In this document: one piece after another, positions 1,092 to 52,733 of the stretch
Layout of the letters: the number at the start of each line of letters is the position of its first letter
How positions within the stretch are numbered: position 1 is the stretch's first letter
DNA from: Guillardia theta CCMP2712
Taxonomy: Eukaryota; Protista; Cryptophyta
Assembly (NCBI RefSeq): GCF_000315625.1
Contig: NW_005434660.1
Location: 296,711 to 360,710, forward strand
Reading direction: 5' to 3'
DNA length: 64,000 nt
Made by a program: the position numbers and the translations under genes
Notes under the pieces: model-generated
Told to the model about the DNA's origin: nothing
Database searches by the model: none
The model's input: the letters and a program-made list of their open reading frames with translations, nothing else

Positions 1092-3125
<2,034 letters not shown>

Positions 3126-3380
3126 TCTGGTTATCCCGGCTCACTGAAAAGTTTACTCAACAGGTAACGTGATCAGCTGGGGGGCCCGTGCGCGCGGCGC
3201 CCGAGTCACACTGGCCGAGGTGACTCGTGACCGGTCACGCTCCCAAGGAGACGAATCCCTGCACGAGTATGTCGCCTTTAAAACTACTTTTGTTGGTTTG
3301 TACCACAACATAAGTAAAGATCGCCGTACACCGTCCTTTATATGTAGTAATTTTTTCTCGCAGGCATAAGATTTAAAACG

Positions 3381-5425: not shown

Positions 5426-5475
5426 ACAAGCGACAACATGGCGATCTCTTTGGAGCTGGCCGTACTGTTGCTGGT

Positions 5476-6716: not shown

Positions 6717-7426
6717 GTGTGACTGAAAGTTACCGGCCCGGCCGCGCCCGGCCGGCAGCTTGGACTGAGCCTGTCCGGGCCGCCGGAACCGCACTCCGTG
6801 GCACCGGAAGTTTCCGGTCCTCCGACAGACAAAACGGGCTCCGTAAAACCGGTAGATACAGATCACGATGCCGCTGACCTTTTTACTACCTTGCCGCAGA
6901 GTCTGGTGCGTTTACTGCATGTCAGAATATCTAAGACTGGTTTAACGTTTGAACTAAAACTTGTTTTAAGTCACCAAACCGTCAAACCGTGCAACCGTGA
7001 CTTTGTGCTCACCCCAAAAGAATAGGAACTTAGGGGGTGGGGTAGGGGCTCGTGGGGACAAGAATTTCCAATCGTTGTGTTATGAGGTATGAAAAGTCAC
7101 CCACCCCAGGGTTTGGCCCTACAGTTTTACCGGGATTTGAGCATGCAATCAAAATACCTCATGTCTCACACTTTTATAGCAAAGAGACTATGATAAGGAT
7201 GTAAAGCGCTCTGGACCCCTCAGGAACATAAGAGTCTAATAACCCCTAGCCCTGTTTTGACCGGAACAGTTTACAAATGTGTTTTAACAATCCACACCTT
7301 TGCAACTGCTCTGCAAGCTCCTCCGACGTTTTCCCAATCGGCTGCTCGTCCTTCATCGCGCCCCCATCCTTCAGCGTTTGTTTGTGTTGCCCCGCCCTGG
7401 TCTATCACCTGCATCAGCCAATCACC

Positions 7427-7864
7427 ATGAGCTCTCTCCGACAACTCCTTTCTGCCGCTACTTATCAGCTCGACGCGCAGCCTCTTCGAGTCAAAGTTTG
7501 CCCCCGACCCCGCGGAAAGCCTTCGACCTACTCGCCAGTGGACCCCATCAATCTCGACTTGTCTTCAGTTAGGTCTCTCTTTCACCTCACCCAAACCGAA
7601 GCTGCTGAAACTCTCGGGATCTCTCTTTCCTCCCTAAAATCCGCTTGCCGTCGTATGGGTATCAGAAAATGGCCGTACAACCGAAGAAGTCAGTGCACAG
7701 CAAGAAGGAACAAGGGAGAATCCAATGGCTCGCCGATGCCCGAACGAGAACCCACGGATGATGATAGCCTTTCCTCGTACAGAAAACCTTACTGGACAGA
7801 GACTAGTATCGAAGAGTTGCTAGAAGAGTCTTTAATGCACGTCATGGGACATCTTTCACGATAA
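7427..7864 (+). CDS. RWP-RK domain transcription factor, intronless
   Basis: LSSVRSLFHLTQTEAAETLGISLSSLKSACRRMGIRKWPYNR matches the RWP-RK domain pattern. Confidence 0.9.
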   Translation: MSSLRQLLSAATYQLDAQPLRVKVCPRPRGKPSTYSPVDPINLDLSSVRSLFHLTQTEAAETLGISLSSLKSACRRMGIRKWPYNRRSQCTARRNKGESNGSPMPEREPTDDDSLSSYRKPYWTETSIEELLEESLMHVMGHLSR

Positions 7865-8049
7865 GGAGACTCTCCTCTATACCCCTCCGAGCGATTTGAC
7901 TTGAAAGCAACGCAAATGATGGTAATATCGACATTCGAAAAACTTAATCTGTGATACATGTTTTACATTTGAATAAACAACAACAAATGCCATGGTACTG
8001 GTTTGATAGTAGTTTGTCACTTGTCATCAAATTTGACGCCCTGTCACAT

Positions 8050-10125: not shown

Positions 10126-10457
10126 TCCTTTGACCTGAAAACCGATCGCGTGTTACACCCGACAGAACAACCCGTCACACGAGAAACATTTCCTAAGTCC
10201 TACACGAGAATTTGCAAGAGATAGTTCAATCAACAATATTCATATCATCAACAATCATCCGATCATCCAACTTATTGCTTCCCTGACGCCCCACAAAGAA
10301 GCAACATAGCACAGGTCTGGAGCGCCAAGGTTTGCTTTCCCCTTACCTTATCATCGGTAAAACACACCATCACATTCCTGATCTCTCTCTACTTCATTGT
10401 TTCAACATAATCAAGAATTTTCTCCCTCTTCTCCTTGCACCTCCTCCATCACCTTCT

Positions 10458-10975
10458 TCATCGAACCATATCCCCCGATCTCAGGCGCAGCCATTGCTCC
10501 CCCGAAATAGCCGAATGAAACTGAAGCGTAACGGACAGCCCCATGATCACCCGGGCCGACCCGGCCCTCACGGCCTGCCGGGTTCACTGAAAACCTCGAG
10601 GCCTCTGGAACTCCAGTAGGCTTGTTTGTCGTAATGCACGCGACCCTGCCGATAACCCTGGCAGTCCTGATGCCTTTGCGATGTACAGGCTTCATGAGGT
10701 AAGACGATGGGGAGAATCTTTCACCTGTCTTCGTGCTGCCCGCATGTTAGTTCGCCCGACCTTGTCTTGCTCTCCCTCTGCTCCAAACACCACACGCCCC
10801 GACCTGGTTTGCGGTTCGAGTCTTTCGAGTAGTGGTGGGTAGTGAGGCCAGGTCCAGCGTTTGCATAATGTGGATGGTTTCCCGTGCTTGGATCGAATGC
10901 AAACATGTCAAATGGAGCGTTTGGGCCTCCCAACTCGCTGAGAAACCAAAGAGGTTGAATGTACATTCTTGACAT
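10458..10975 (-). CDS. Small multi-exon hypothetical protein
   Basis: MSRMYIQPLWFLSELGGPNAPFDMF...; exons spliced by eye to ...QAYWSSRGLE|FHSAISGEQWLRLRSGDMVR*. Confidence 0.45.
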
Positions 10976-11118
10976 GCAGCGAGAGAGAGAGAGAGAGGAG
11001 GGAATGTTTCAATCTCAAAGACATCATCTCGAGATGGCACTCTGTGCACTGATGATCTACTACTTGACATCTCATCTTCCATCTCCATGTATGCTCGCTC
11101 ACATCAAACTCCAGCACC

Positions 11119-12560
11119 ATGGTCACCAGGCGAATTGATGGGAGGTTCGCCAAGTCCCTCCTAGCAAGGAGTGCGTCCAGCAGCTCCATGTTCAACCCAA
11201 GGATGTCAGTACCCCAGCATGCGTCTCTCTTCTATCCTTACATACTGATTTCCTCATGCTCCTGGTGCGGCTCTCATACACCCCTGTCATGTGCAGCGCA
11301 AGAAATTCACACTTCCAGGTTGCATCGAAAGGGAGGCCGTGAGATGGAATGACGGTGTTGAAATCAGCCCCGGTCCTCCTTCCCATCCACCAGCAGATTC
11401 ATGAGCGACCAGGCCAGTGCAAGTGCACCTGCAGAACCCATGGTGACGGTACGATGTTGAGGCCATGCGAAACTGAAGTGTGCGGTTGCAGGAGGAAGAG
11501 GTCGATCCCGGGGAGATCGAGGGGACAGACCTGAGGGTCCTCAAGTATCCTCATCCTAAGGTGCTGCTCGCCTCTGTCGACCCTCCTCTGACCTGCATCA
11601 GCTGAGGGCACCAGACGAGGAGGTGACAGAGTTCGATGATAACCTTCGCAAGGTTATGTGACTATGGCCAAGTTGGCCTGTCGTGATCTCAATTGCAGAC
11701 CATCAAAGAAATGTTTCTTGTCATGTATGCCTCACGTGGAGTTGGACTTGCAGCCCCTCAGGCAAGTTTGTAGAGTTGATGGAGATGAGATCTACTCACT
11801 AAGAGAGCAGGTCGGTATCAACAAGCGCATCATGGTTTTCAACCCTGAAGGGGACAAAAAGAAGTGGCTTCAGGTTTTGATTTGTCATCAATTCATGATG
11901 CAAGTGACTGTCTGTGGTAGGAAATAGCTCTGATCAATCCAAAGATTGTCGAGATGTCAGAGGGGACAGACGTTGAGGTTTTTTCATCCAACCATCCTTG
12001 TTTTTACATGACGTTGTGTTTGGAATAGACCGAAGCTTGTCTTTCATTTCCTGGAATGCAAGGAAAGGTGATGAGGATTTGATTCAATGTTGCTTGTATT
12101 CTAACATGCAGAAAGGTTCGGAGACACAAGTGGATCAAAATAGAGGCCCAGGATCTGAAAGGGAAAACGATCAAGAAGAAGGCAAGAAATTTGTATCTTA
12201 GTGAAATGTCGTTGGTTTGACCAGCCTTCAGTTTACTGGGTGGACTGCCCGCGTCTTCCAGCACGAGTACGATCATCTCGAAGGTGTGTTTTCTTTTTCA
12301 GTAAGAGAAACCTCTAACACCGTGTAGGAGTTGTTTACATCGACAGGCTCGAAGACGAGGAAGACAGGGTTAGTTGTATGCATTTCTAGTCCAACAGTTC
12401 ATGATCACAACAACTTGCAGCAAACTGTTAAGCCAAAGCTTGACGAGCTGAAAAAGATCTACAAGGTCTACTCTTCTAATATGTACTTACGAGAGAATGT
12501 GACACTTCCCAGGAACAAAATGGTGATGAAGGAGCTCCACAGCTCAAGTGGAGCGAATGA
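11119..12560 (+). CDS. def: Peptide deformylase (organellar), many short exons
   Basis: All three PDF motifs after splicing: GVGLAAPQ, EACLS, QHEYDHLEG; also LRVLKYPHPK and LINPKIV; start uncertain. Confidence 0.92.
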
Positions 12561-12699
12561 AGACTAGAGGGAACAGACACAGAGCTATTGCAAGACTCGT
12601 TTGTTTAGAGTTTAAAGTTACATCAAAAGCCATTTTGCAACCAGTTCTCAATACAAGCTGAATGCAGGCACGCACACAAGGATTTCACGAATTATGAAT

Positions 12700-13647
12700 T
12701 TATCGGCCCATTGGATGGCCAAGAGCGTTGATGGACATGATCCCTCTCGAGTGATGTCCCACCTTCTGGCGCTTCTTCGCTGGCATAGATGTGGAGATCT
12801 GGAACTGAAGCTCATGCAACCTGTTCATGATGACACGAAGTCTGCGCTCATACATCATGAGCTCCATTGGCTGCTTGCCCTCAATCAGACGGACAAGCAC
12901 GTCCAAGTTGTCCAGGCCATTCTCAGAGCAGACAGCCTGCACTGCAGGAGGGAGGGGCTGAATAGGAGCAGAGTTGCCACCCATCGATCCCTTGAGCTTG
13001 CTTCTCTTGCGTCCAGGGATTCCCATGGTAGCACCGCTGGCCTTCAGTTGCTCTGCTTTCTCGGTCCAAGGCTTTCTTTCCTCCTCACTGAGCGCTTTCC
13101 ACATAGCTCCAAGATCCTTGACGTCAAGAGGGGTAGTGTGGCCTGCTTCCTTGTGCTCCTGCCTCTTGTCTTGGCAGAAGAGAAGGTATGACGATGGAGA
13201 GGGGGCGCTGGTTGCTTTGGGCTCAAGCTCGTTAAGAACGGTCTCAAGGCAACGACAGAAGTCACTCTTGTCTCCCCAGTACCGACGCTCCTCCTTGGGG
13301 ATCTTGGCTTGGCGCTCGGTAGCAGCAGCCTCAACAATGGCGCGAGGAACATTGAAGGTGGCGAAGTCAGGACCACTTGCAACAAGCTGCCAGCCATTCA
13401 AACGCTGGAGCACAACTTCGCGGTGATGAGTCCAGGCCTTGTAACGCATGCCTCCGTTCATCTCAGGATCCACGATCTTACAAGTCAATTGGATCACGTC
13501 TCCACCTCCCTGAAGGCCGGCAAGAGTATGGACATCAACAGGGCCATGATGTCCAACATTGTCGCCAGAATCCATGGCGAATGGGAAGCGAAACTGGTTC
13601 TCGGAGGAACTGCGTCGCTGGGAGAGCATAGCTTGAATCTCCTGCAT
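12700..13647 (-). CDS. HMG-box DNA-binding protein, intronless, 315 aa
   Basis: APSPSSYLLFCQDKRQEHK...VKDLGAMWKALSEEERKPWTEKAEQLK is an HMG box; C-terminal PAKKRQK is NLS-like. Confidence 0.88.
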   Translation of the reverse strand: MQEIQAMLSQRRSSSENQFRFPFAMDSGDNVGHHGPVDVHTLAGLQGGGDVIQLTCKIVDPEMNGGMRYKAWTHHREVVLQRLNGWQLVASGPDFATFNVPRAIVEAAATERQAKIPKEERRYWGDKSDFCRCLETVLNELEPKATSAPSPSSYLLFCQDKRQEHKEAGHTTPLDVKDLGAMWKALSEEERKPWTEKAEQLKASGATMGIPGRKRSKLKGSMGGNSAPIQPLPPAVQAVCSENGLDNLDVLVRLIEGKQPMELMMYERRLRVIMNRLHELQFQISTSMPAKKRQKVGHHSRGIMSINALGHPMGR

Positions 13648-14947
13648 TGTAGAAATGTACTGCTCAGAAACAAAGTTGATGTCCTACCCGAAACAGAGTC
13701 GCGCAGGGAGCAACAAAACGAAGGAACGCACAAACGAACCCGCTGCTGCTAACAGGAGGAGGCAGAGAGTGCGGGAAAGGAGCACAGAGGGGTGCGGAGG
13801 AGGATGAGGTAGGGGTAGCGTCCAGGAAAGTGTAGAGACGCTTTGTGGGGTGGAGGAACGATGAGGGGGTGGGCGCCAAGAGGAGGATGGATCAGCGGGG
13901 TGGGTCCCACTCGCCGCGGAAGAAGAGGAGGTAGAGGTAGGGGCCAAGGGAGGCAGGAGGGGTGTAACTGCCAATAAATTAAAAAAAACAAATTCAAACA
14001 TGCAGGTACTGATAGACAACATATTGGATCCTGAAATTCTACTGGAATACCAACTAATCTTTGAATTATTTTTTCTCAAGTTAACCAAAGATACTGACCG
14101 TCTGTTAGTTTTTTTCAGGGTGGGTGGCGGCCAAAAAGGGGTACCACAAGAAGGGGTGGGGGTGGCCTTCCAAAAGAAGGGGTAGTGAAGTTGACCGGTA
14201 GTCACATTCATGTACCCACCCATGGGAAATTTTCTAACATGGAGCACGTACAAAAGTGCCCTTGATCACCCCTACCTAAATTCAAATTTTCGATTAGAGG
14301 GGGTGGGGGTGGATCATGCCAGCTTGAGTGGGGTTCGGGGGTAGGGGGTCATGTGATTGTTTGAATACATAAAAAAACCAATGCTCATCACTCGTACAAC
14401 ATGTTTGAAATGCGCTAGGAAACGAGCACAGAATGCTTCTTATTCTTTGTTTCTAGCCCGATTTATCCAAAACTAACTCGCTATGAATCCGCAGTTAAAA
14501 AAAATCAGAATGATCCGCCTCTGCAGGCAAAACACACCTATTTTGCAAGTGTACATATTGCATTCTAGGTTTTTTTTCAAGACCCACCCGAATCCAATAA
14601 CTCGAAATAGATCCAAGTACCGTGCAGTTCAAGATCAAAATCACCCGTACAGCCATAACCCCTACCCTCTGATAAAGCCCAAAAAAAAATAGTGGACAGG
14701 TTGGCCTTCTTCAGGTGAGTGGCCGGCGGCCCGGCCCACCGTGTTTGCCCGAGTCAACGCCACTGGCTGGGGCCGCCCGGCTGCAGTGACTGCGGCACTG
14801 TCAAGCCTGAGCCTTGCCGCGCGACGCTGACGGTCGCCGTGAGGACCGTACTGGCTCACTGATCGGACTGAGTCACGCCGGACTCCCGGAGCCTGGGCCG
14901 GGCTCCGAGTCAGTGAGTCGCGGCGTCCGGCGACTCAAAATCATTCC

Positions 14948-17088
14948 CATTCTGGGGTCAAACCGCGTTGGTTCTCGTCCCATATTTTCAAGGGGGTGGT
15001 GCATGGGAAAATGGGGGTACACGGCGTGTGATTCGCGCAGGTTGAAATTCTGTACTGTTGAAATTCAAACCATGTTCAAAACTGTGATTAAAAGTGATTT
15101 TGGATGTTTAGCTTATCGTTTCCTGGTACCTTCTAAAATGTTTTAATTCTACACGCCATCACCCACTACCCCAGTGCGTCTTCCCTCGCCATTCTTCTCT
15201 CATGTCGCGAAGCTCTTCTCTGCGGATCCTTGTCTTCAGTGTTTGAGTTTTGTGCGAGCATGTTAGCCCAAGTTGCAGTGACTCGCAGCAGGTGACTCTC
15301 ATCAACATCTCTCTTCGTCAAACCCTCTGCGTCGGTTGGTGAAAATGTTATTATGCCATAATCTGTTTCAAAGTCTGGATCATATTTTTGAACGCATCCA
15401 TGGAAGGGGACGAGTAAACCACGAACACACACGAGCATGAAGAGACTCTCAAGTATTTTGTGAGAGGAGAAGGTGCAAATGAACTCGTTCCATCACACAG
15501 GTATGGAGTTCTTCTGTGGATTGTTCATTTTCTAATCGTTGTGCACAGGTAGCAAAAGCCTGGCGATGTTGAGAACTAGATTCTGCATGCTTGTAGCTGA
15601 AGCGTATTGCAAAAGTCCAAGAGCTTTATTCCATGCAGACTTTCATCTTTATGTGCTGGATGGAATATCATATTTATGAGAGATGCTTCACTGTGCCACA
15701 TGACTTGTTCAGATCATGTTTGAACTTCTCCGCCTTTGAATGATGCATCTCTTGTTGCATGACTTCAAAACACTTTGTGAAGATGCATAGTCTTGTATAT
15801 ATCCATGTCCACATGCTCAAAGCCTTGCCTCTTTGTGACAAACAAGATTGAAACCTCTTCAAGACAGCAAACTCAACCGCACGGTGTTGGATGGCAGTGC
15901 ACCTACAGCATGTGCTTCCATTCTGTTGTGCGCGCAGTTGGAGAAGTTCCATATGACATTGTGGTTGTCATTATCATTGTCTGGGAGTCCGTGTCAATTT
16001 GCTGATAGTTCGACATCCTGAGATAAACGCTTCGAATGAATAATAAATGTCAAATCAGATATCACCTCCAACCTTGATTCTACATTAATGTCAGTCTGGT
16101 TGCAACGCACAATGGATTCTTGCATGCCAGCTTACAAGCTTGAGTCTTGATCCCTGATATGATCTGAGGCTTAATTGGACGTCAAAAGCTCCACCATTAG
16201 GGAAGCCAAGCAAAGTTGATGTATTTCAGCAAATATGCAAACATGCAAATAACCTGAATGAGGAGAGTTTGAAGAGAGGAGGGAAGAATCAACAAGAGCG
16301 TCGTGAGAGTCAAGTAATTGGCATATTTCAAAGAAGCAGAAGTCATCAAAGTTGTTCTGATGATGTGAAGCAACGATGTATCGAAGCGTACAGAAGATTT
16401 GCCGTGCCGAGGAGGGAGTCAAGTGAGATGTGATTGCACCTTAATTAAGCGGACTCGTCATTATCTTACAGATTATCTTATTCAGTTCACTTTTCAGATA
16501 AAGTACATTACTCTGAGAGCCCAGAAGTCTTGAAGAGAAATTGATGATACGATTGACTTAGTCGTTGGAAATGTAGGATGACGAACTCATGCAGCCTTGA
16601 TCCACTTCTACAAGATCACCATGTCAGAATATGTGCTGGATTCTTGATGCCAATGGTACCTTGCGATCATGTTCTTACTTGGCGGTTCTTCACCTGTGCT
16701 CATGGTGGCAGCTCGCTGACCTTGCTGCTGTGCTCGCCCGGCGGCTCAGCATGACGGCTCGGAGTGCGATTAGACGATGGGAATGATGGGAGCGTTTCCC
16801 CACCCTCATTGATAGGGTGGGTCATCAAAATTGTTTTAGATAGTACAAATTAGCAGTTATGAACCGTTACTCAGTACAACTGTTTGTACCACGGATTCGA
16901 ATAAACAATTCATTGCCGTTAAAACAAATGGACACGCCAGTTCAAAATTTGAAGCACCCCTACCACTGATATTACCGAGCAACACCCCTCAAAAAACATG
17001 GGGTACACTACCACCGGTATCCTATGAGAACAGCATACGCATTCCTCTTTTGCGTTAATAAAGACCAACGCGGTTTGACCCCAGAATG
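14948..17088. mobile_element. 2.1-kb DNA transposon-like element with 25-bp perfect TIRs and a 3-bp TSD
   Basis: CATTCTGGGGTCAAACCGCGTTGGT (14948-14972) is the exact reverse complement of 17064-17088; TCC flanks both sides (14945-14947, 17089-17091). Confidence 0.9.
15166..16752 (-). pseudogene. Decayed intron-containing gene of unknown family inside the TIR element
   Basis: Frame MLSRRASTAARSASCHHEHR*RTAK*EHDRK|KWIKAA*VRHPTFPT...; stops and His/Cys codons explicable by C>T changes; last exon is ORF 15166-15438. Confidence 0.5.
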
Positions 17089-18877
17089 TCCGCCATCGGA
17101 TCGGCACCGTCCGACTCCGGCGAGTCACGCCGTGCGCCGTGCGCCCGCCGGCGGGCGGCGCCCGAGGCTGCCACCGTGCCCGGCGGAGTCCGATCACTGG
17201 CGCAGTCCGATCACGGCCACGTGACGCCCGGCGCGCCGGGCGCTCAACAGTGACGCCGGATCCGAGGCCCTCAAAATGCTCCTGGCAGCCGCAGTGACCG
17301 CTCACTGATCGGATCAGACTGAGTCACTGCCGCTGCACAGCCGCACGGTTTGAACCGAAGGTCTCAGGCTGAGGCTACGGCCGCAGTATCCGATGATAGC
17401 CTATACCGTACGGTCACGGTACTCAGGCCCGATCGCCGGACAGTCACGGTACCCGGCGTTCTCCGGCCCCCGGCCGTTCAGCCAAATAAAAGTTGGCCCG
17501 GCCCCGGCCCGGAGTCCGATCATGATGATAGCCTAGTACTACCGTAGCCTATCATAGTATACCGTACTGACAGCCTGAATCCGATCACGGTACGCCGGGC
17601 CGTTCACGGTTCTCCGGGCCGTTCCAAATTTGGCTCGGCGGCGCCGGGCCGGGCGGCCGCGGCGGGGCCGAGAGTCGGAGCCTCAGCCGCCGCTCTCAGA
17701 TCGACTCAGTGCCACGGTGATCGAGTCGGAGGCCGGGAGCCGCTCCGGAGTCCGGCGCCGTACGGGCGCCGTTCCAGCGCGGCCCGGCCGCCGGCGCCGC
17801 CCGACTCCCGTCAGTAAGGTCCCCTTCGTACTGATTCAAAGCTTTAACTTAACTTTGACTCAAGTTGAGTAAAGAAGGCCGGCCTGTCACGTGACCGGGT
17901 CCGGGCCGGCGATCCGATGATCGGGCCGGGGCCGCCCCGGCTCAGCGGCTCGCCAGGCTCCCTGACTCTCAGATCGACAGAAGTCCGCAAAACCGGCAGA
18001 CCGAATCCGATGACCCCCGGGGCAAAAACATGAAAAGCAAGGATTTCGGAGGAGATTTAGAGATTAAAACTTCTTAAAACTATCTAAGTTTTACAATCAT
18101 GAAAGGTAGTGTTGTGGTGGAATTGAGGTCTCAATCGAGATCTTGGATGCTCTTGTTGAGTCCAAAAAACGTCTTTTCATTCAGAATTTGGTATCTCTTG
18201 CTTATATTTCCTCTCTAAAAATACTTCTGAAGTATATCTTTTTATGAATTTAAAACATTTAAAAGTAACTCAGGGGCCAAGGAATCGACGGGGTTGTATT
18301 ACAGAGCCTAGCACCGGTCCCCAGTATTGGATGAGAAATGAACGGGTTGTTTGTAAGGATGAATCGCCTTCAAGGGGGTGGGTCAAATCCAGTTGTAAAC
18401 GATATTCTATTTGTGCAAGGGTGGTGGGGGTGGTGGGGGTACATATCCAGTTGGAATCGGGAATGAGGGGTTATTTCCCTATTACGGACGGTGGGTAGGA
18501 AATAAATCAGAACCAGAGGGGGTAGGGTGGTCAGTTTGTTGATGTTTTTGTTGGTTGGTTCTCCAGGACTTCATGTGGTGGGTACGTAAGAAGTACGGGT
18601 CCATTTCCACGTATTTGGACTTGTTTGAGGGGTGGGGGTAAACCATTGGAGGGGTTTAGGTGGGTGGTGGAGAGTAGGGGATAAATAAGTTGCAAAGATG
18701 TTTCGTAGCGCAAGGAGACATGGAGAGAAAGAACGACGAAGAGAAAGTAGTGCGAGGTCTAACAAACATGTTGACCTGATATTCGTCGAGGAAGGATGTT
18801 AGAAGAGAAGACTAAGATGACGAGGCAACTAGAATACAAAATACGGCTGGGGAGACATAGATAATATTGAAAGCAGA

Positions 18878-23256: not shown

Positions 23257-24878
23257 TCTTACGACCTTAGCAGGTCAAGGAGGTATCGAGCCTGAGACAT
23301 TGGTCACGTCTAGAAACCAACGAAAACACATGTTGTTCTCATACGTTGACGAGAAATCTAAGAAAACAAGCACATTTCATGGCATTCAACATTTCAAGCA
23401 ATATATGATAAACGAAACCAAGGAAGAGACCATTTCACGTGTTTGTTTCTTGACGTAACCAAACTATCATTCTCGACCCGTACCTATCGACGAGTATCTA
23501 ATGACCCTCACTGCACGCTCTTCGAGAAACATCAATGCCAGAACAGCTCGACTATCTCTGAGGCCATGGTCTGAGAGTTGAATCTCTCCTCTCCTGCTCA
23601 CTTCTCTCCTTCCTCTGCCCCTTCATCTCAGCCCAAATCCCCCAGTGACTAGCGGCCATTCCCACACCATATAACCGGGTCCGGTCAGGAATCACGAGGT
23701 ACGGGTCCTCAAACACCGGTGCAAATCTCATTAGAAAAGTGGGTACTAGTTGGAAGATCCTGTAATGATCGATGGGTGGGTGGTACAGCGAATCGATGCG
23801 TTTGGGTTGTTTTTCAGCAAGGCCTCCGAGTGATGATACGGTAGCGGCAGTTACATTGCAACTCGCCGGGGTCTCAGTGCAACCGTCACTGGCCGGCGCA
23901 CTGCCGGCCCGCGGCTGCCGCGGCTGCCGCGTCCAGTGCCGGCGGACCCGACGGGGGGCGGCTAACGGGCCGCCGAACAGGCTCCGTCCGCCCCGGCCGG
24001 GCCGCCGGCCGGGTTGTGACTCCGATGCTCAGCACCGTCACCCGGCGTGGCACTGCCGGGCGGCCGCCGCCGGTGACACGCCGGGCCGCGGGCCGCACTG
24101 CCACCAGTGGGCCACGGCGGACGACTCGCGCCCTACTGCGGCGGCCCCGTGCCCCCGGCCGGCCGTCACTGCCGCACGCCCCGGTGACGTGTGACCCTCA
24201 TCATGTGCAGAACGGCCCCCGGCCCGCGGCGCGGCCCCTCAGTGCTCGGCCGTTTGCCGCAGTGCCACGCCGCGGAACTAAGTTCCGAGTGCCACTGGGC
24301 CGCCCGCGGCCCGCGGCCCGCGGCCCGGCCGGGCCCGCGGCCGGATCGGACTCCGGCCGCCGGGCGGGCCCTCCGATGACCGACTGAAAGTGAGCAACGA
24401 ACCGGAATTAGAAATCCTGCTGCTAATGGCAGGGAAGGAAGAAACTGATTGGCAGGGAAATGTGAGATTATTTTACAGAGAAGACGAAGATAGAGGATGA
24501 GTTGGTAGAAGATGGATAGATTGGAGTTAAATTGATAGAAGGTAGATGGATAGAGGATGAGTTGATAGAAGATGGATAGATTGAGGATGGATCGAAAGGA
24601 AATGAGAAGATGGGTTGCTAGGGGATGGATAGAAGATTGGTTGATAGGAAACTTGGCGACAAATGGATAGGGGATGGATCGGTGGAAGATGGGTTGATAG
24701 GATATGGATGGGTAGGGGATGGATTGATAGAAGCTAAGGCAAAGCGAGAAAGCATAAGATTTGAGGGGAACGGTGAGAGGAGAGGAGAGACACAAATGAG
24801 AATCTAGGAATCACGATGCTTTAGCGACAAATAGCAAGAAAATGCGTTCAAGGTTTCTCTTTTGACACCGTGAATATC

Positions 24879-26027: not shown

Positions 26028-26121
26028 TCCTCACCTCACCTCACCTCACCTCACCTCACCTCACCTCACCTCACCTCACCTCACCTCACCTCACCTCACC
26101 TCACCTCACCTCACCTCACCT
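26028..26121. repeat. (CCTCA)n microsatellite
   Basis: ~18 copies visible. Confidence 0.97.
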
Positions 26122-26352
26122 CCACCTCCTTCCCCCTTCCTGCCTGCCCCCAACCCGCATACATGCCGGTTCCATCAAACACTTACGTTGTCCATTTCCA
26201 ACGAACTCTAGGAGCAACCACCCCACCTACTCCTGCAAGGGCCGAAACTAATTACAGGACCCCTACATTAGACATAGTTTTCTACCCCACCTTGGTACCG
26301 CACTCACGACCTGTCTGTCTGTTGCCTGTGCCCCCGACATCGGAAGAGATCG

Positions 26353-29191
<2,839 letters not shown>

Positions 29192-32977: not shown

Positions 32978-34436
32978 TTTGACTTTAGTGTGTAGTGAGG
33001 GAGGAAGGAGGAGGAAGGTGAGGATGGGAGGTCGGCAGAGACTAACGTAAGGTATTGTGTAAATTACTACAGGGGAATGTGTGGTAAATTTTCCAATCTC
33101 ATGTCACTCTTCGACGAACAGTTCTAGTTTGAAATCTTTGAAAAGCTTCGTAGGTGCTAACCCATGATGCTTACAGTCATCATTTCCTTTCTTTACCCCT
33201 CAAAAAGTCAGCAAAGCAGAGTGATGCGCGTTGTAAACAGGTCACTGTCTGTAAAATGGTGACATCGACTCAGACTAGCTGTTTGCTCCGGCTTTGCCCA
33301 GGGGCCGGGACGTTCCCCTCAGCGCCCGGCCCGCCCGGCCGGGTTGTCGGGACGGTCGGTCCCGTCACACCGTCGGTCTTTAGTACTCAAAGTTAAGTTA
33401 AAAATCAGTCGGTGCTGATAACTCCGCCGCCTCCGGGAGGCACGGTCACGGAGTCCTGGGCGCGGCCGGGCCCGGCCGGGACTCCGCTCGCCGCCACCCG
33501 GCCGGGCCCGGCGTGGCAGTGGCGGCGAGCAGCGACGATCATCGGCGGCGGACCGTGAAGTTCGGGCGCCGGTTGGCGGCCGCACTGCAGTCACGGCGGC
33601 CGGGCTCAGCCGCTGCCGGGCGGCCACCGTGCGGCAGTGAGGCTGGCGCCCGGCCGCGCCCGAGACCCGGTGACTCCCGGAGGCGGGTCACCGGGTGCAT
33701 AGCGTTGCCGTTCCGTATCCTTGTCGGATCAGTCAACCAGGGTGGTTCTCATAGTAGTTTTAGTCAAATTAAAGCGGCAAGAGAAAATTGAGCTAAAAAT
33801 GTTTGCTCCGTCAATTTATGTACCTTTTTCGTTGCCAGGCCATCCAAGACGAGAAGGGCAATGTTGAGCAAAACCTTCCTCTATTTGATATGAATAGGCG
33901 TGTATAGTTGACTAAATAATCATGAGGTGGCTCGGGGTAGGTATTCAAATGATTTGAATCTTTCCAACGGCCTCCAGCCCGTGTTGAGGGGTAGGGGGTA
34001 GTGCAAACTTCTCGTATCAATCTAAAACACTTGTAAACGACCTCACACTTGCCCCGGTCTCTTCCCTATCCCACTACTCCCAATGTACTCAGGGACTGTT
34101 TGCTCAGCTGCTGAGCGCAGTCAAGGACCATGGCCCCTCAATGTTAACTCCTGAAAGTGCCAGGCAAGTACTGAGATCAAACAGCTCAATTCTTGGCTGA
34201 GAATCACACCTATAGTAGGTTGAATGTGAAAGGTATGCATCGAAATTTGCACTTGCGTACCAAAGCACTCATCAGCTATAGGTGCTGGTTATTCACTTCC
34301 AGAAGAAGGGAAACATGAAGGGAACCGATCAGAGAAGCAACCTTCGAAGACATAAAGGAAATTCGATTCTCCTTGTTGTGTTGACGCCCTAGCTTCCTTT
34401 ACCTGAATGCTTCGTCGGTTGAATATGAAACATATT

Positions 34437-35700
34437 TCAAGAGACTTCCTGTTGCTTTGCCATGATTGCGTTTTTTGAGGCTTCTCCCAACCTATTGTAA
34501 TATGGCGGTGTCATTTGTGAGGAGGTGAGGAGTTTGAGAGGCTGGGGGAAGGAGAGGGGAGGGGTTGGAAGGGAAATGGACGCCTGGGAGGCCAGGCTAG
34601 TTGATATGCCTGATCGCTGCGAGAGGAGATGCCGGAGGAGAGACTGTTTACTCAAGACCACTAGCGAGGAAGGCAGGAGGGCGAGGAGGACATGAGAGGA
34701 GAGGAAGGAGAAAGCTACGGGTAGAGACGGTTTACTTGACAGCACTAATGAGGAAGGGATGCTTCAGAGCCTCCAGTGCCGTAATCCTCGTGCGGGGATC
34801 GATGTCGAGGCAGCAGTTGAGGAAGTCCCAGATCGCATGTTTCTCATCCACCTCCAGCCAGTCCTTGCATCCCGCATGCGCGCCCAGGGAGCTTGACAAG
34901 GTCCGCCATGTTTGCTTGAAACCGCGGGCATAGCTGAGATGCAGTTCCAATGGTGGAATCTGAATGACATCAAGTTAGCAACCTCAGGCCTCCCTCCTCC
35001 ATATCACCCTCATCCTCATCCTCTTGATACAACAACGCCGACGACAACAATTTTACCTTAACGTCGAGCTTGAAATCTTCGATAACATCTCTGATCTTAT
35101 CTCTGTACTGACCCGTATACCCATAGTTGTGCTTCCACACAGCATCCATGCTCTTGATGTACATGCGCAAGCTGCTCAGACAGTCAGACAAGCGCACTTC
35201 CAAGGTACACAAAGAGATCTCCATCGTTGCCGTGACTATGTCGTTATGCTGGAACCATTGGAACTGTGTCGTGCGGCACAGCAGGGTAAGCAGTACTACC
35301 CCAGCAGCCCACACGTCCACTGCTGTGGTCTGGCACTGCATGCCCATGAGCACTTCGGGCGCTCGGTATCCCCGAGTTCCCGCGCGGTTGACTGGACGTT
35401 CGAATTTGACCCCTGAGTTCCTCACTGTCACCGATGCGTTCGTCTTGCTGACGCCCAACATGATCCGCCTCTTCGCCATCTGCTGCGCCATCTCTAGTTT
35501 CTCCTGCTCCTTTTGATTCCGCGAGGAGCGAGAGCTGGCCGTAGAAACCTCACAGGGCAAGATGTTGCCGATGCTGCGGCCTGATGAATGCATTTGTTTC
35601 TATGCCAGCCCAAAGTCCACAAGCAAGTACTTCTTATTCCTTCTGTCGTAGAGCCTCCGAGGAAGTTATTCAATTTCACGTCTCGATGTATAATAAATGT
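34437..35700 (-). pseudogene. CDC7: CDC7-like Ser/Thr kinase pseudogene, 5'-truncated
   Basis: IIHRDVKLNNFL/YDRRNKKYLLVDFGLA* with an 8-bp frameshift (35651-35658) and a TAG at 35600-35602; RAGTRGYRAPEVL..QTTAVDVWAAG; LDIDPRTRITALEALKHPF; subdomains I-V not found. Confidence 0.85.
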
Positions 35701-36365
35701 ATAATGTATAAGACAGTTCTTGCTCAAGACCGAGTTTAATGCACACTGTGACACGAAACCACTGAGAATTGAGGCAGCACCGTCTGCACATGAGACGTGA
35801 CTCCCGACTGTCACAGTGGTATGCTAGAATATGAAACTCAAGCATCATTGCAACGCCGCCGCTGTTCATCACACGGACGGCCCACTGCCCGGTACCGCCG
35901 GGCATTGCCGCCGCGTGGGGCCGCCGCCTGGCTCGGAACTTGACTCTCACCCGGGTCAGTGACCGTTCAACCGTTCAACGGTTGACTCACCGGTAGCCTT
36001 GAAGCCTGGGACCGGTCCGCCGGAGAGTCCGGCTCGCCCGGCCGCGGCCGTCGGACCTTGAGTTTTCAGTGTTCAATCATAACTGATGGCAGCGGGGCTA
36101 TCTGATCGGACTGGCCGCACTGCAGTGCGGCATGGCTGGCATGCTGATCCCGGCATTAAGAGTCGGCAGTGCCGACGGTGACCGTGTCACGCGCCGGGCT
36201 GCGGCCGCGCCGGACTCGACTCGGAGGCTCGGAGCCCGCGTCCGACTCGGAGGCTGGCCTGCCTGGCATTGCCGCGCCCTGAGCCCCGGGCGGCGCTGAC
36301 TCATGGCATGCCGGAACTTGGAACACTCAGTGCGCCCGAAATGATTCAGGGCCACAAAAAATATT

Positions 36366-36908
36366 TGGAACAACTTGAAAATTGAGGGGTTGTTCGGCCT
36401 GAAATCTTTGTGTGTCACGCAAGCAAGTCCAACCTACATGGAACAACGTGAAAATTGAGGGGGTGTTCGGCCTGAAATCTTTGTGTGTCACGCTCCTCCA
36501 AGTTTCAAGTTGTTCCATATAGTTTGGAGCAAGTCCAACCTACATGGAACAACTTGAAAATTGAGGGGATGTTCGGCCTGAAATCTTTGTGTGTCACGCT
36601 CCTCCGGCCTGAAATCTTTGTGTGTCACGCTCCTCCAAGTTTCAAGTTGTTCCATATAGTTTGGAGCAAGTCCAACCTACATGGAACAACTTGAAAATTG
36701 AGGGGGTGTTCGGCCTGAAATCTTTGTGTGTCACGCTCCTCCGGCCTGAAATCTTTGTGTGTCACGCTCCTCCAAGTTTCAAGTTGTTCCATATAGTTTG
36801 GAGCAAGTCCAACCTACATGGAACAACTTGAAAATTGAGGGGATGTTCGGCCTGAAATCTTTGTGTGTCACGCTCCTCCGGCCTGAAATCTTTGTGTGTC
36901 ACGCTCCC
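36366..36908. repeat. Tandem array, 137-bp period, each unit with a 65-nt hairpin and two copies of a 26-31-bp direct repeat
   Basis: Eight copies of CGGCCTGAAATCTTTGTGTGTCACGC (36395, 36468, 36574, 36605, 36711, 36742, 36848, 36879); three full palindromes with 27/30 paired arms and a GCAAG loop. Confidence 0.97.
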
Positions 36909-36926
36909 CGGCATCGCAAGTCAGCT

Positions 36927-38819
36927 TTGATGGCCATTATGGCCTTCACAGGCGTGGCTGGCCCTCCGAAGCTCAATCATGATGCATCGCCAATACGATA
37001 TCAAATATCAAAATAAAAATATCAATGTTGAAAGTTTCCCGCCACTGTGAACTCTGCGAAGCCGTACAGATATGAGGATGTGCAGCGTTTGACAGAGCAA
37101 GACAAGTCAGGTGAGCATTTATCTCTTTTTTTTTCATCGAAATTATCACGGGAAGAGATCCAAATGACGTGTTCTTGATGCAGGTTGGAATGATTTGCAG
37201 CCTTTGGCAACTTGTATGAGATTGATGAACGGGTGAAGACTTTGGCAAGTGCCCAACCAATATTACAAACCGGTATCCAGGAGTACGTAGACGTACCAGT
37301 AAGCCGCCCAGCATACAAAACTCTCGAGACAATGGCTGCATACGAAGGGGTTTTCGACACATCGCAGAACTGTCCCGATGTGAAAAGGTTGTGACATGAA
37401 ATGGGCACAAACAAAGATAAGTTCAGGACTCGGGAGTCGATCAGGTCTAGGCAAAATATTGACATGGTCATCTCACTGCATGGAAGAACATGCAAAACTG
37501 AAGGAAAAGCTCAACAGAAAGTTCTAAATGAACATCTACAGCGCATTTTAGCAGTCACGGTCGGAGCAGGTTGATGCTTGAAACAAAGATGATCCTCAGT
37601 ACAATCGAATGATGACAAGTAAGTCCCGTGGTTCGTGAAGGATTCTTCATCCAATTCTTAAGGATGTGTTGGAACGATGAAACATTTTGCAAATCACCAA
37701 TTTCATCACACTGACTGATGCATCATGTAAATATTACTGGTGTGAACTTGCATCAGATTCTGTTCATCGGATGAACCGCTACCAAGCAGTTGATGTCACA
37801 GCAAACAAGAGAGCCGTTTTGAAGATGCTGATATTCCTGACCGTAGAGCATTCAAGATGTGGCCACATGTCACATGCTTCTTGGTTAACGCAGATACACC
37901 CTCGCCAGGCAAAAGATGGAACGTCTTCAGGATTACAGGGAGGTCGGTTGTGCTTGTACCCTGATTGTAACTCTTCTAATAAAGATATGATAACCTGAAT
38001 GTGCAATTCTGTTTGTTGATTCACAGTGTTTGCGACTCGATTGCAATCATCGAGTGCTTGCTCTGTTGAACAAGGCACTCCTCTGTAGAGCCATGCGACA
38101 AGAACACTACAGTTGCACGGTAGCATTGCGACACCAAGACAGGATTGATCCGATGAACGTCTCATTTATTGATACGCAAAGGCGTCATCTGCACATTGTT
38201 TCATTTCTGACTAGGTTTCTGTGCAATCGAAATCCTTGTGAAAATATCATGAACGAGGAAAAATTTGAAGCGAAACGGAAAAATCATCGAAATATGATCA
38301 TGGATATAGTGATTCATGATCAACAACGGTTCTCTACAGTCATCTATGCGGGCAGGAACAGTCATCTTCTGTGCAAACGTCTCTTCATGTATCGTTGAAC
38401 GGTTGAGTGCATGTAAGACTTGCCTCCATAGAAAGGTGAAGTGCATGAATCCTGACTGTAAGACTAGAAGAATTGAAAGCAAGTGATGACATGAGAACAC
38501 ATATCTAGACAGAAAAGTCGCTCAAGGTACAGCTGGATACAAATTTCTCACAAATCACAGTCATGCATTTGAGCGCAACGTGCAACCTACGGCAATTTGA
38601 ATAAAGGGTCAATCAGAGTTGATTCTGTTCAATGGTGTATCGATTATCAATTCCTTACCTGATCATAAAAATTTCATCTTGTCTTCGAAGAATATTTGCA
38701 AGTACACCCGCGGATTGTTTGAACCTAGGGTGCATATTCCATTGCAGGATGGATGATTCAAAACCTTGGCCCAACCTGTAGAGTTGAGAAAGAAGCTCGA
38801 TCATCTCTTACAGGTATGA
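36927..38819 (+). pseudogene. Decayed multi-exon gene of unknown family inside the 5.8-kb element
   Basis: Long frames interrupted mainly by TGA (e.g. LE*FAAFGNLYEIDERV..KRL*HEMG; ~38340-38819); Cys cluster ACKTCLHRKVKCMNPDC. Confidence 0.55.
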
Positions 38820-39968
38820 TATGAGATCTTCATCTCATTTCTATCTCAGTTGGGTTGGATTCGAAGTCTCTCAATATCAAGGTTCATCCTGGTGAGTCAG
38901 GAAGGCACCATTTCATCGCTTCTTGCTCGTCCAGGGAGAGGGGGCTTGGGGAATGAGAAATGGGGGTTACCCCCACCCCCTATTGTAGAGTTTCAAACTC
39001 GTTCAAAGGTGGGTAGTTGAGGGTGCTCCATACCCACCCCACCACCCAAAATGACTCAAACGGAGGGGTTCTCGGATCCGAAGGAGTCCCGCCTCCATCA
39101 CCCCCTCTCATTTGAATTGAATGGTTCAGGCCGACCCCACATACAGGCTTGCAGTTTTCTTATGTATGCCCATATGATTTGATCGGACAGGCCCCAGGTT
39201 CAAGGGATGAAGCAATCACCAGCATGCTTGAAGATTTTTCATGGGAGTGGGGTTATACTTGTACCGGGTGTGTACAATACATAGGGGAGAACCCCGAATG
39301 GTATCAAAAGAGTACCAAAGTCACATGGTTCGGACTGTACTAACTGGTACCAAGAAATTGTACTCAAGAAGACCCTACCCCTGAAAAAGTCCTGCTTGGC
39401 TCTTCGTGATTTGAATTCGGAACACGGTCGGAAGACCCACCCCGCCCCCACATGAGGCGTGGTATGCGTGGATTTGAATCTACCACCCTCACCGCGAAAC
39501 GTTTTAGAGCTACAAGGTCAATTGAGAAAGGCAACGCTATGTGACTGGGCGCCCCCCCGCCCGGCCCGGGCCGCCCGGCGGGCGGCCGCCGCGCCCGGCG
39601 CCCGAGCTCGGAGTGAGTGATCAGTAGGCTCAGAGGCTAGTCACACTCAGCCCGGGTGCCGCCGGACCCAGTCCCTCTCAGGCTCCGAGGCTCCGAGCCT
39701 AATGACGCCGCCGGTGCCACGGACTCCGAGGCTCCAGGATACGATGATGAAAGAGTGCATGCAGTAAATTCAGTACCGTGTTATAATCTACACACGAAGT
39801 TGGGTTTGCGCTTGACCCGTCTGGCACGGTTCTGCTTCTCGTCCCCCAACGTTGACGTCCAGCTCGTGCAAATATTCTAAGAAATCATCCCTGCCGCAGC
39901 AGCAGACCACGTGCGTTCCAACCTGACACGGCCCGCATGCCCTGCTCGGCAGACGGGTCAGATTGATA

Positions 39969-40791: not shown

Positions 40792-41537
40792 GCCCCCCGT
40801 CGTTATGGTGGCGCCCGTTAACAGGTTCGTCGTTTAGAATGATATATCACGACATATCTGTGACTTACAATCAGTCAGATAGCATGCGAGACCCTGACTA
40901 AATGCAAAACAAATAAATGTAGATAAATGCAAAACGCCAACAAGCATCAATCACAGAGAATTAGGCGTTCTCAAACTAGTAGCTAGTTTCAAAATGCTTC
41001 TTTGCAAATATTTCATCACATTATCAGATTCTGTTCACGAGTCCCAATCATACCATCTCAACTCGCATCTCACTGCCCGTTTCGCAGTCCCTTGCTCTTC
41101 CTCCTCAAGCCGCCATTGCTCCTTCACCTCTGAAGCGAGCTTGCCTCGCTGCCCGATTCTAGGCAGCGGCCCGGGCCGGCCCCGCGGATCCGATCGGTGA
41201 TCCGAGCCCCGGGCCCGGCGGGATTTGCCAGGGCACTGAATCGGACATGACTCTGTGACTCAGTGATGCCATGATGGTCGGTCCCCGGGCCCGCCGGGCA
41301 GACTTGCCAGTCTCTTTACTCATCGGTCACTGATGAGTCGCCACACCGGCCGCTATCAAACTTCAAACATGACCGGCGTCATCCGATTGATTGAATTGAA
41401 AACGGACTTGAACTTCAAGAATGCTAACTAACTAAGTTGCCACCCGCGGCCCCGGGCCGGCCGCAGCCGCGCTGAGCAGAACCGGGCTGCCGCCCTCGCC
41501 GCGCCGCCGCGCTGGAACTGATTTTGGAAGTTCTTTC

Positions 41538-48588: not shown

Positions 48589-48688
48589 NNNNNNNNNNNN
48601 NNNNNNNNNNNNNNNNNNNNNNNNNNNNNNNNNNNNNNNNNNNNNNNNNNNNNNNNNNNNNNNNNNNNNNNNNNNNNNNNNNNNNNNN
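48589..48688. other. Assembly gap (100 N)
   Basis: Run of N; true distance across it unknown. Confidence 1.
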
Positions 48689-51200: not shown

Positions 51201-52733
51201 TGATGAATAACTCATGATGTTACAACTTTCTCGTGAGTCATATACTTTTAGAATGATCTTGGTTGTGATTCAAGTGCAAGAAACATGTTAAAATATCAAG
51301 CTACATCCTCATCATCAGCTTTCCTGCGACTACCGCGCGCCATTGTTCGGCAGTAAATAGACCCCCACCACATCTCCAAATACCCCTACCCTATACTTTG
51401 ACTGCTTTGTGCTTTGAAGCAACCGGGACAAATCAAAAAGCGATGGACCCCTACCCTATTAATTTCCCTAACCCTAAGAAAACTTGCCGAAAATCAAGAA
51501 AACGGCAAAAATCAAGGTCTGCAATTTGTGTCCCCGAAAGAATAACAATCTTTCTCCGAGCCTGCCTAGCTTGGATGGACTGTCGGGCACCCTGCAAGGG
51601 GGCCGGGCCCGGCCGGACATCCACTGGCATCTTTATACTCAACAGGATACTGAACTCCTGATTGTCCTCGTACTGATTTTTAACTTAACTTTGAGTAAAG
51701 ACTTGATACTGGTGAACTCATTCGAGTACAGTCAAACACGTGAACTACTCAGGCGGCCCGGCCCGTCTGAATCTGTTGGAAGTCGTCCGGCTGTTGCATG
51801 GCCATGCGAGGCGTGGAAGCCAAGCGATGGGAGTTGGAGTCGAAGGTACGTTGGGGGAGGAGGCCCAGCGCCTGTAAAGGATCCAAAGCACTTTACCGCG
51901 TGCCATGGCATTAAACATGAAAGTTCAAATATTAGAGGGAAAAATGACAAATATATTTGAAATTTCATTGGAAACACCATGCCTCAGTTATGTCAGCTGC
52001 ATGGCACCAGAGCGGACTTGCATTGCAGCCACTTGAAATATTTTCGCAGTCAATCTGTTTTTCCTAGAAAATGAAAAGGAATTTTGAAAGGTCTTCCTGA
52101 AATCGCTCTATAAGGATCGAAACGCCATGGTTTGCCATGCTGCCCGCATGACCAGTCCACATCATGGATACCACCCCTAAAACGACTACCCTAATTACAT
52201 GACTCTGAGATACCGGTCATCTTGTCGGCTGATCTGAATTTATCTGGTTTTGCTCCCCTTCTGTCTCCTTCATGGATACCACCCTACCCTTTCATAGACC
52301 CACCCCTAGATTGAACACGCACCCTGCAGTGTTCTCCCGTGCAACTGTACACGATGATGCTTGGGCTAGAATTATTGACACTAAAGGTGAAAGAATTGAT
52401 ATGTACTCTTATACTAAATATTCGTATACAATATACCTCAAGTCTTCACATATACCCTCCCTCCGCAGGGAAAATGTATGTCTCTTTACTACCCTTGGTA
52501 TTAGTACCCACCCTGCCTCAAGAAGCTAAAGTGACGGCTATTGGAACAACTCCGTGCCGTTCCCCATATTACCTCCCCACACTCCTCTAGTTCATTTGCC
52601 CTCTTGTTGTTACAAAAGCGATCAATCCTTACCTCCCTTCACTCTACCTCTCCCTTGCCTCCTCCCCTTCTTCTTCCTACACGCCCTTCAGCCTTCTTCT
52701 ACCTCACTTCTCTTACCTCTCTCATTACTTGCT

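Follow-up and report, generated by a model that had tools for sequence, protein, structure and literature searches.

A stretch of 64,000 nucleotides (nt) of nuclear DNA from the cryptophyte Guillardia theta CCMP2712 (contig NW_005434660.1, positions 296,711 to 360,710; the window, with positions counted from its first base) carries a series of GC-rich islands, among them the one at 17089..18025, and raises the question of what process builds such DNA. An initial annotation, made from the letters of this DNA, had proposed that the islands are dense in odd-length palindromes whose middle base is C or G, and that they are piled-up scars of transposon excision. Here, we report that the excess of C/G-centred palindromes in the islands is real and very strong, and that elements with terminal inverted repeats (TIRs) and 5'-CA...TG-3' ends enter the islands far beyond chance. 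We regard it as probable that the islands are narrow, reused insertion sites of cut-and-paste TIR transposons, and that much of their sequence consists of accumulated excision footprints.

Odd palindromes centred on C or G

The island at 17089..18025 (GC content 0.67) is the right half of a palindrome island of ~1.2 kb that is split by a TIR element, TE1, the end of which directly adjoins its first base. Odd palindromes with arms of at least 2 nt are centred at 164 of its 630 C or G positions (S, p=2e-45) and at 21 of its 303 A or T positions (W), and 74% of its bases lie under S-centred palindromes. The strings quoted in the initial annotation are in place: 17528-17568 contains TAGCCTA, CTACCGTAG, CTATCATAG, ATAGTAT, and TACCGTA, and 35969-35983 reads AACCGTTCAACGGTT.

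We assessed the 11 islands listed in that annotation against dinucleotide-preserving shuffles. S-centred odd palindromes with arms of at least 2 nt number 608, compared with 213.5 +/- 13.9 in shuffled sequence (z=28), and the excess persists with arms of at least 3 nt (269 vs 62) and at least 5 nt (44 vs 5.3), when W-centred odd palindromes show no excess in the same islands (78 vs 92) and even palindromes a mild one (377 vs 308). All 11 islands are individually significant. At the level of pentamers, each of the 32 NN-S-N'N' words exceeds expectation, by 1.7 to 16 times and across all 16 arm types, and the W-centred pentamers as a class are not above expectation. The spacer has to be exactly 1 nt: with 3-nt arms, z reaches 21 at a gap of 1 and is ~2 at gaps of 0 and 2. 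About one quarter of the S positions in islands are palindrome centres, and the probability that the bases flanking an S are complementary is 0.50 at offset 1, 0.42 at offset 2, and ~0.33 at offsets 3-7, against a baseline of 0.29, when the same probability around W is at or under baseline. Tandem duplications of 4-9 bp are also frequent in islands, and direct repeats of 4-mers are enriched at distances 5-9.

Pure runs of C or G could inflate these counts, and local composition was controlled for by shuffling inside blocks of 8 to 40 bp. With 8-bp blocks, palindromes with A or T in their arms remain 4.4-fold enriched (225 vs 51, z=23), all-G/C palindromes remain in excess (294 vs 214, z=6.4), and W-centred palindromes still show no excess. 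Holding the exact W/S pattern fixed leads to the same picture: flanks are complementary in 83% of the W-S-W triplets in islands, where 50% are expected, and the palindromic share is 66% for SWSWS, 78% for WSSSW, and 78% for WWSWW, where 25% are expected and where pentamers of the same patterns in the rest of the window reach 19-26%. The predicted predominance of C/G over A/T centres thus survives global shuffles, local shuffles, and W/S conditioning in the window, and we discard a composition artefact on the strength of the last two. Furthermore, S-centred palindromes cover 63-77% of island bases and 14-17% of coding controls, GC-rich coding windows score at or below background, and a scan of the whole window returns high scores at the islands and at two coding microsatellites only. 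The same grammar is found in independent islands on other G. theta scaffolds.

The annotation had also noticed no long repeat shared between islands. This holds in that matches between islands are 14-24 nt long, on which ground we rejected a repeat family as their origin, but several islands do have in common one AT-rich motif of ~33-45 bp, described below. Ribonucleic acid (RNA) genes were rejected as well: no Rfam family was matched at gathering score and no tRNA was found. The ratio of observed to expected CpG is 0.95-1.2 in islands vs 0.73 for the window. As a side observation, the contrast between 0.73 window-wide and about 1 in islands hints at cytosine methylation outside islands in this cryptophyte.

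Element insertions and the turnover of island D

TE1 (14948..17088) has perfect 25-bp TIRs (14948-14972 and 17064-17088), starts with CATTCTGG, and has the termini 5'-CAT...ATG-3'. It is flanked by a 3-bp target-site duplication (TSD), TCC (14945-14947 and 17089-17091), beyond which the left half of the split island extends over 14700..14947, with 42 of 167 S positions acting as centres and complementary flanks in 31 of 34 W-S-W triplets. No open reading frame (ORF) of more than 128 amino acids (aa) overlaps TE1, and its internal ORFs reach at most 92 aa. A second element, TE3 (33698..39541), is 5.8 kb long in the window and 5.8-6.6 kb among its copies, starts with CATAGCGT, and is bounded by 12-bp TIRs, CATAGCGTTGCC ... 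GGCAACGCTATG, again with CAT...ATG termini. Inside it are a gene for a protein kinase, a gene of 57 aa, tandem repeats of 137 bp, and an island of its own (island D). Through the kinase ORF (34970-35593) we found two proteins annotated in G. theta (the GUITHDRAFT_107937 / _99883 family) along with three loci, and three further copies of TE3, at 92-98% identity by BLAST, are present in assembly GCA_000315625.1, two on JH992995.1 and one on JH992967.1; in the loci that we extracted around them they span 5274-11898 (L038), 3683-12898 (L039), and 5252-11860 (L040). Judging by sequence, both TE1 and TE3 look non-autonomous, and TE3, of which there are at least four copies, seems to be an element that carries genes. 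The 137-bp tandem repeats (36349-36907) comprise ~3.5 copies, each with an internal inverted repeat, and their copy number varies between TE3 copies.

Homology between TE3 copies stops exactly at 33697 and 39542. Since it ends right at the island edges, 33290-33697 (68 of 301 S positions as centres; the boundary falls at 33697/33698) and 39542-39740 (37 of 149, beginning one base past the TIR) can be joined as one island split by TE3. The flanks of the other three copies are unrelated, which points to independent insertions, and yet palindrome-island sequence is found on both sides of all four copies; in ~40 kb around the other copies, island-like tracts occur solely at the TE3 borders. The presence of islands played no part in the choice of these loci, to which a gene within the element had led. 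The third TIR element, TE2 (48991-51541), has 15-bp TIRs, TCTTTCGGGGACACA, and the duplication ATAA, and lies ~50 bp outside a small island; its 166-aa ORF (49093-49593) has an exact match in a G. theta transcriptome and is without a Pfam domain. Overall, two intact elements split islands, as the annotation had stated, and five of six TIR-element insertions (TE1 and the four independent TE3 copies, TE2 being outside) fall within islands that make up ~5% of the ~149 kb of G. theta DNA examined, for which a hand calculation gives a binomial probability of ~2e-6.

Island D (35860..36327; 75 of 315 S positions as centres), within TE3 and directly upstream of its kinase gene, is the sole island with paralogous copies, and could be compared between the window, L038, and L040, the fourth TE3 copy having an assembly gap there. 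It shows 12-18 gap events per 250 alignment columns at 69-94% identity, as opposed to 0-3 events at 97-100% identity in TE3 outside it. Pairwise alignments yielded 28 distinct clean-flanked indels of 4-13 nt in ~0.75 kb of island D, when indels of the same size in TE3 outside the island number 0 in 2.47 kb and ~7 in 2.0 kb, so that the island density is more than 20 times higher. Island copies are hence an indel hotspot and are not conserved base for base.

Each indel was normalised to its maximal junction duplication and compared with a null of shuffled inserts at random positions. A junction duplication of exactly 3 bp is found in 7 of 28 indels, where the null gives 1.3 (p=2e-4), and one of 2 bp in three more. 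The core between the duplicated copies starts with C in 16 of 26 cases (p=1e-3) and ends with G in 19 of 26 (p=1e-5), for base frequencies of 0.31; it starts with CA in 6 of 25 and ends with TG in 6 of 25, when the mirror controls give 6 for G first, 5 for C last, 1 for TG first, and 0 for CA last. These end bases (C/CA and G/TG) are the terminal bases of TE1 and TE3. In addition, at least five indel events contain inverted arms of 3-6 nt templated by the flank, which agrees with the expectation that islands differ by short insertions with duplications and palindromes.

The clearest footprint-like insertion is a 13-nt event at 36117..36132 that the window copy has and L038 and L040 lack; it reads GCA/C-TGC-AG-TGC-G/GCA (slashes setting off the duplicated copies), that is to say the duplication, C, its reverse complement, a 2-nt filler, the reverse complement again, G, and the duplication. 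At 35810..35820, a 9-nt insertion also absent from L038 and L040 reads GT/CACAGTG/GT, which could be a C, a 5-nt inverted copy of the left flank, and a G, or equally the remnants of CAC...GTG termini. Incidentally, its core CACAGTG (35812-35818) is the heptamer of the V(D)J recombination signal and of Transib termini; this match may be due to chance or be the remnant of a CAC...GTG-ended element. Among the other events, ATG/GCAT-G/ATG is restricted to L038 and is polarised as an insertion by both other copies, TTA/C-TTA-G/TTA is shared by L038 and L040, one event has an inverted copy of GGCTAC after a central C, and a perfect 8-bp tandem duplication (35962..35979), found in the window copy only, overlaps the 15-nt palindrome AACCGTTCAACGGTT. 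That new palindromes arise together with short insertions points to a mutational origin rather than to selection on motifs.

Proposed stacking of excision scars and competing origins

How could insertion and excision build such sequence? In the mechanism that we propose, an element would insert with a 2-3-bp target duplication; upon excision, each flank would be sealed into a hairpin whose tip retains the terminal base of the element, C for the left flank and G for the right one; a nuclease of the host would then open the hairpin 1-3 nt off-centre and end-joining would close the site, leaving a scar of the form flank-C-rc(flank) ... rc(flank)-G-flank, where rc is the reverse complement. Each cycle would add ~5-10 bp, always with new G/C and with local sequence copied in direct and inverted orientation. 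Because every event would add an obligatory G/C together with inverted local copies, the pad would lengthen, turn GC-rich, and fill with C/G-centred palindromes. The first nick would be placed one base inside the element, such that the terminal base becomes the hairpin tip, a geometry that fits since the scars keep both duplication copies intact while adding a left-hand C and a right-hand G. As a matter of fact, a centre of 0 or 1 nt needs covalent hairpin ends or a switch to the complementary strand, and not a self-folded strand, and the 1-2-nt reach of the symmetry is the usual length of palindromic additions. That the central C/G would come from the terminal base pair of the element also fits the two elements that split islands, both of which end in 5'-C...G-3', and the indel cores (C first in 16/26, G last in 19/26).

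To model the process, we simulated ~126 events from a 120-bp seed of 45% GC, with the first parameter set tried: a 3-bp TSD, the C/G kept in 80% of events, geometric palindromic additions, and some nibbling. The simulated GC content is 0.67, vs 0.69 observed; S-centred symmetry at offsets 1-3 is 0.49/0.41/0.36, vs 0.50/0.42/0.33, and W-centred symmetry 0.30/0.24/0.29, vs 0.31/0.24/0.27; the simulation also reproduces the depletion of direct repeats at distances 1-2 and their excess at 3-9. In the model, scar stacking suffices for the island statistics, and it would explain their GC-richness through the G/C that each event obligatorily adds.

From the perspective of known transposition systems, several parts of this mechanism have precedents: the footprints that excision leaves, the hairpins formed by flanking DNA, and hotspots of insertion at the 5' ends of genes are all known. 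In hAT, MULE, and Transib elements, as in V(D)J recombination, it is established that flank hairpins are opened off-centre and that the repair machinery of the host joins them (PMC5499845, PMC2921059). The islands resemble the products of hAT elements such as Ac/Ds, which seal flanks as hairpins, undergo off-centre opening and end-joining, and leave short inverted duplications, with a one-base offset that gives odd symmetry, as in the islands (PMC2921059, PMC5499845). They differ from them by the 3-bp duplication peak and by the extra C or G beside an intact duplication copy. hAT elements, Hermes included, generate 8-bp duplications, and the tip of their hairpin complements the final base of the flank, which shows up as a base exchange. 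Among the paralog indels, no 8-bp duplication with base exchange was encountered, the single 8-bp tandem duplication being perfect, and the scar at 36117-36132 does not fit the hAT geometry, since both of its 3-bp copies are intact with an added C and G. Moreover, known hAT footprints are single scars, whereas the islands would be kilobase stacks.

CACTA elements (En/Spm) have a 3-bp target duplication, the termini CAC.../...GTG, and footprints with inverted duplications reported in plants. In this regard, several indel cores start with CAC or end with GTG, one of them being CACAGTG, but the intact elements TE1 and TE3 end in CATTC.../CATAG... and not in CACTA/CACTG...TAGTG/CAGTG; as to duplications, TE1 has TCC/TCC and the TE3 flanks share 1-2 bp only. 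To place TE1 and TE3 in the CACTA superfamily would be a guess. V(D)J coding joints, for their part, also derive from hairpin ends opened off-centre, carry palindromic additions of 1-4 nt beside G/C-rich bases, and match the 1-2-nt symmetry of the islands in length scale, but they are somatic, RAG-driven, and signal-bound, with even palindromes and no germ-line accumulation. As to reused narrow targets, maize Mutator places 85% of its new insertions in hotspots that cover 1.9% of the genome, near gene 5' ends (bioRxiv 10.64898/2026.05.18.725947), which the islands resemble. In the literature, we found no report of Mutator-type hotspots that are built of footprints or have a palindrome grammar, and no description of kilobase GC-rich islands of stacked footprints, of such a grammar, or of a hairpin geometry with its tip taken from the element.

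A number of observations weigh against scar stacking or limit its reach. The whole case comes from one genome and ~8 kb of island sequence, no transposase domain was found among the 28 ORFs scanned against Pfam, and the bases shared by the flanks of the four TE3 copies are only TG, C, AC, and T, which do not match the 3-bp peak. The simulation bears on sufficiency only. Among the indels, insertion and deletion were polarised for a few only, 3-bp junction repeats are also left by microhomology-mediated deletion, and a pair of occupied and scarred sites was not found among the three alignable copies of island D, a very small sample. Across all islands, alignment-free counts of TSD3-CA..TG-TSD3 (TSD3 being a 3-bp TSD) are not enriched (5 vs 9 in the mirror pattern), and those of TSD3-C..G-TSD3 show a slight excess in islands (433 vs 347) as they do outside (1789 vs 1591); overprinting would be expected to blur such a bulk pattern. 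Likewise, the spacing of centres is random and flat, with no preferred distance except that adjacent centres are avoided, and the order of C-then-G vs G-then-C centres has no distance dependence (for nearest-neighbour centres this test is uninformative by construction); this offers no positive support, and flatness is what heavy overprinting would give. Finally, several tandem repeats of 3-4 copies resemble slippage rather than target duplications.

Some of these points would be natural if the islands were hotspots of double-strand breaks independent of transposons, due for example to transcription, replication, meiosis, or a domesticated nuclease, an origin that we consider unlikely. The breaks would be processed by hairpin sealing or by error-prone end-joining with templated fill-in, and the transposons would merely share open DNA, a scenario to which we give a small but real chance. 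It accounts for the indel hotspot, the inverted flank copies, the 4-9-bp direct duplications, and the near-gene location; it needs no transposase, of which none turned up among the 28 scanned ORFs, and is at ease with the strict TSD3-CA..TG-TSD3 pattern not being enriched. However, it gives no reason for a centre restricted to C or G, for a 3-bp duplication peak, or for inserts that start with C/CA and end with G/TG like the element termini. Snap-back synthesis by end-joining polymerases requires a loop of several nt, when the observed centre is 1 nt.

Quite unlikely in our view is that the islands are promoters akin to CpG islands, GC-rich through lack of methylation or biased gene conversion, with palindromes that are selected sites of dimeric factors. 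As in the CpG islands of vertebrates and plants, the DNA is GC-rich, has a CpG observed/expected near 1 (~1.0-1.2, vs 0.73 in the window) in a CpG-depleted genome, and lies mostly upstream of genes (the kinase, RWP-RK, probable HMG-box, and 51.8-kb genes), and several islands have the 33-45-bp AT-rich motif and recurrent words such as TCCGATCA. Yet CpG islands are not known to have an excess of C/G-centred palindromes or to originate in transposon scars. An enrichment of all 16 arm types and of no A/T-centred type is not what any set of binding sites would predict, the symmetry being a statistical property at the 5-mer scale rather than a matter of repeated motifs; the islands have no alignable common sequence besides the core; indel turnover in island D, as estimated from the alignment, is about the local substitution rate, against strong constraint; and one island lies between convergent 3' ends. 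A promoter function can in any case coexist with an origin in scars, as a secondary use. We hold it very improbable, lastly, that the pattern is a by-product of low-complexity GC-rich DNA (C/G runs, slippage, or cryptic minisatellites) with no process making palindromes. C/G runs do raise the chance of a C/G centre, global shuffles set the expected number of all-G/C palindromes too low (block shuffles give 172-214), tandem duplications of short length and repeats of 3-4 copies are common, and two microsatellites elsewhere score high; but A/T-arm palindromes stay 4.4-fold enriched in the 8-bp block shuffle (z=23), W/S conditioning leaves 66-78% palindromic vs 25%, slippage yields direct and not inverted repeats, and the effect is limited to a 1-nt centre. 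Together, the 1-nt centre, the block shuffles, and the W/S conditioning largely refute this last possibility.

Coming back to scar stacking, three independent lines, namely targeting, paralog indels, and simulation, lead us to favour it; the claim that islands are reused landing pads grown by insertion and excision is thereby supported, though not proven, and we observed neither the loss of the C/G excess under composition control, nor base-for-base conservation, nor a lack of element ends at islands, on which it could have failed. The elements could be drawn there by open chromatin at the 5' ends of genes, by the AT-rich core motif, or by the scars, should these be preferred as targets. As regards the last, a feedback in which TSDs would be N-S-N' triplets was rejected: by our own tally, 4 of the 7 3-bp duplications have this form, which is indistinguishable from the island background. 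It is conceivable, and we put it forward more tentatively, that a transposon family creates, extends, and reuses its own pads, that nearly every island base belongs to a stacked scar whose tip keeps the terminal C/G, and that promoter-type DNA arises de novo in this way, the islands being a ledger of insertions.

If scar stacking is the correct reading, its significance would be several-fold. Footprints of excision are familiar as scars of a few bases that stand alone, and they would here become a major sequence-building force that makes kilobase GC-rich islands, mostly beside gene starts, with a distinctive signature that is easy to score, namely C/G-centred odd palindromes. This would provide an origin mechanism for DNA similar to CpG islands in a protist and a new route by which a genome makes GC-rich, promoter-like DNA. 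It would also offer an instance of a transposon in positive feedback with its target, a hairpin geometry distinct from those of hAT and RAG in that the tip base comes from the element end, and a simple statistic to find such landing pads in other genomes.

Core motif, other islands, and gene context

The AT-rich motif common to several islands lies at 17828..17875 (+ strand) in the island of TE1, where it reads GTACTGATT...TTTAACTTAACTTTGA...AGTAAAGA, and further copies in the window are found at 33378-33425 (-) and 51670-51702 (+). Its core TTTAACTTAACTTTGA extends to ~45 bp, with a consensus of about CCTGATTGTCCTCGTACTGATTTTTAACTTAACTTTGAGTAAAG; the 16-mer is exact at the three window sites, when 0.47 matches are expected at up to 3 mismatches. 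Beside TE3 in other loci, it recurs near 3608 and 12955 in L039 and near 5174 and 11919 in L040, in both of which TE3 lies between two like-oriented copies. Overall, all seven copies in the ~149 kb of G. theta DNA are in or beside an island, and the motif may serve as a promoter element, be a very small mobile element, or attract the transposons. Metagenome scans with the core gave no match, and 35 viral-contig matches to the 16-mer were set aside as probably chance in AT-rich phage DNA.

Apart from the split islands and island D, the window has two larger intact islands, one at 23820..24390 with a GC content of 0.77 and 111 of 439 S positions as centres (p=4e-30), and one at 41160..41520 with an AT-rich middle (41350-41440) and 62 of 230. 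The small ones are those at 3130..3245 (14 of 71, with 15 of 17 W-S-W triplets complementary), 6720..6825 (14 of 73), the very small 10545..10590 (7 of 32, p=0.008), and 51598..51770 (14 of 84, with 26 of 34 W-S-W triplets complementary), in which an AT-rich stretch with the conserved core motif sits between two short G/C blocks. A degenerate 15-bp tandem repeat array (GATAGAGGATGAGTTG-like; 24489-24745) lies ~100 bp from the island at 23820-24390.

With regard to genes, as given by Pfam matches in the window and gene calls in the paralogous loci, ~220 bp separate island D from the annotated kinase gene downstream of it, an HMG-box ORF lies downstream of the split island at 14.7-18 kb, the island at 6720..6825 is ~450 bp upstream of an RWP-RK ORF (7277-7864, + strand; Pfam match), and in that at 51598..51770 the AT-rich stretch with the core motif precedes by ~100 bp a probable first exon and its start codon (ATG near 51800, then GTACGT). 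The TE3-hosting islands of L039 and L040 abut RWP-RK genes or lie ~550 bp upstream of them, when the L038 island lies between two convergent 3' ends. The statement that many islands lie 5' of genes is therefore borne out for most of them but not for that one, and a promoter role, as far as sequence context indicates, is plausible. Not all genes have an island: in G. theta, a locus of 22 kb shows a single weak one, and in the cryptophyte Baffinella a locus of 39 kb shows none.

As side observations, a palindrome island lies immediately upstream of each of three distinct genes with an RWP-RK domain (window 6720-7864; L039 2436-3685; L040 4128-4627), and in L039 an 800-bp direct repeat, 98.9% identical (2435-3234 and 13692-14492), brackets the island and TE3, with one copy in the RWP-RK gene and the other a gene fragment. 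Elsewhere in the window, long (CAGGAG)n, (CCTCA)n, (GGA)n, and (CAT)n/(CGT)n repeats occupy 1224-1573, 26029-26133, 26375-26625, and 56370-56760, of which the CAT repeat imitates the palindrome score, ATCAT being an odd palindrome in its own right. A 100-N assembly gap (48589-48688) is followed a few bases on by a C run of ~20 nt (to 48712), and a GH47 mannosidase ORF (43953-45578) is 96% identical to a Guillardia theta protein.

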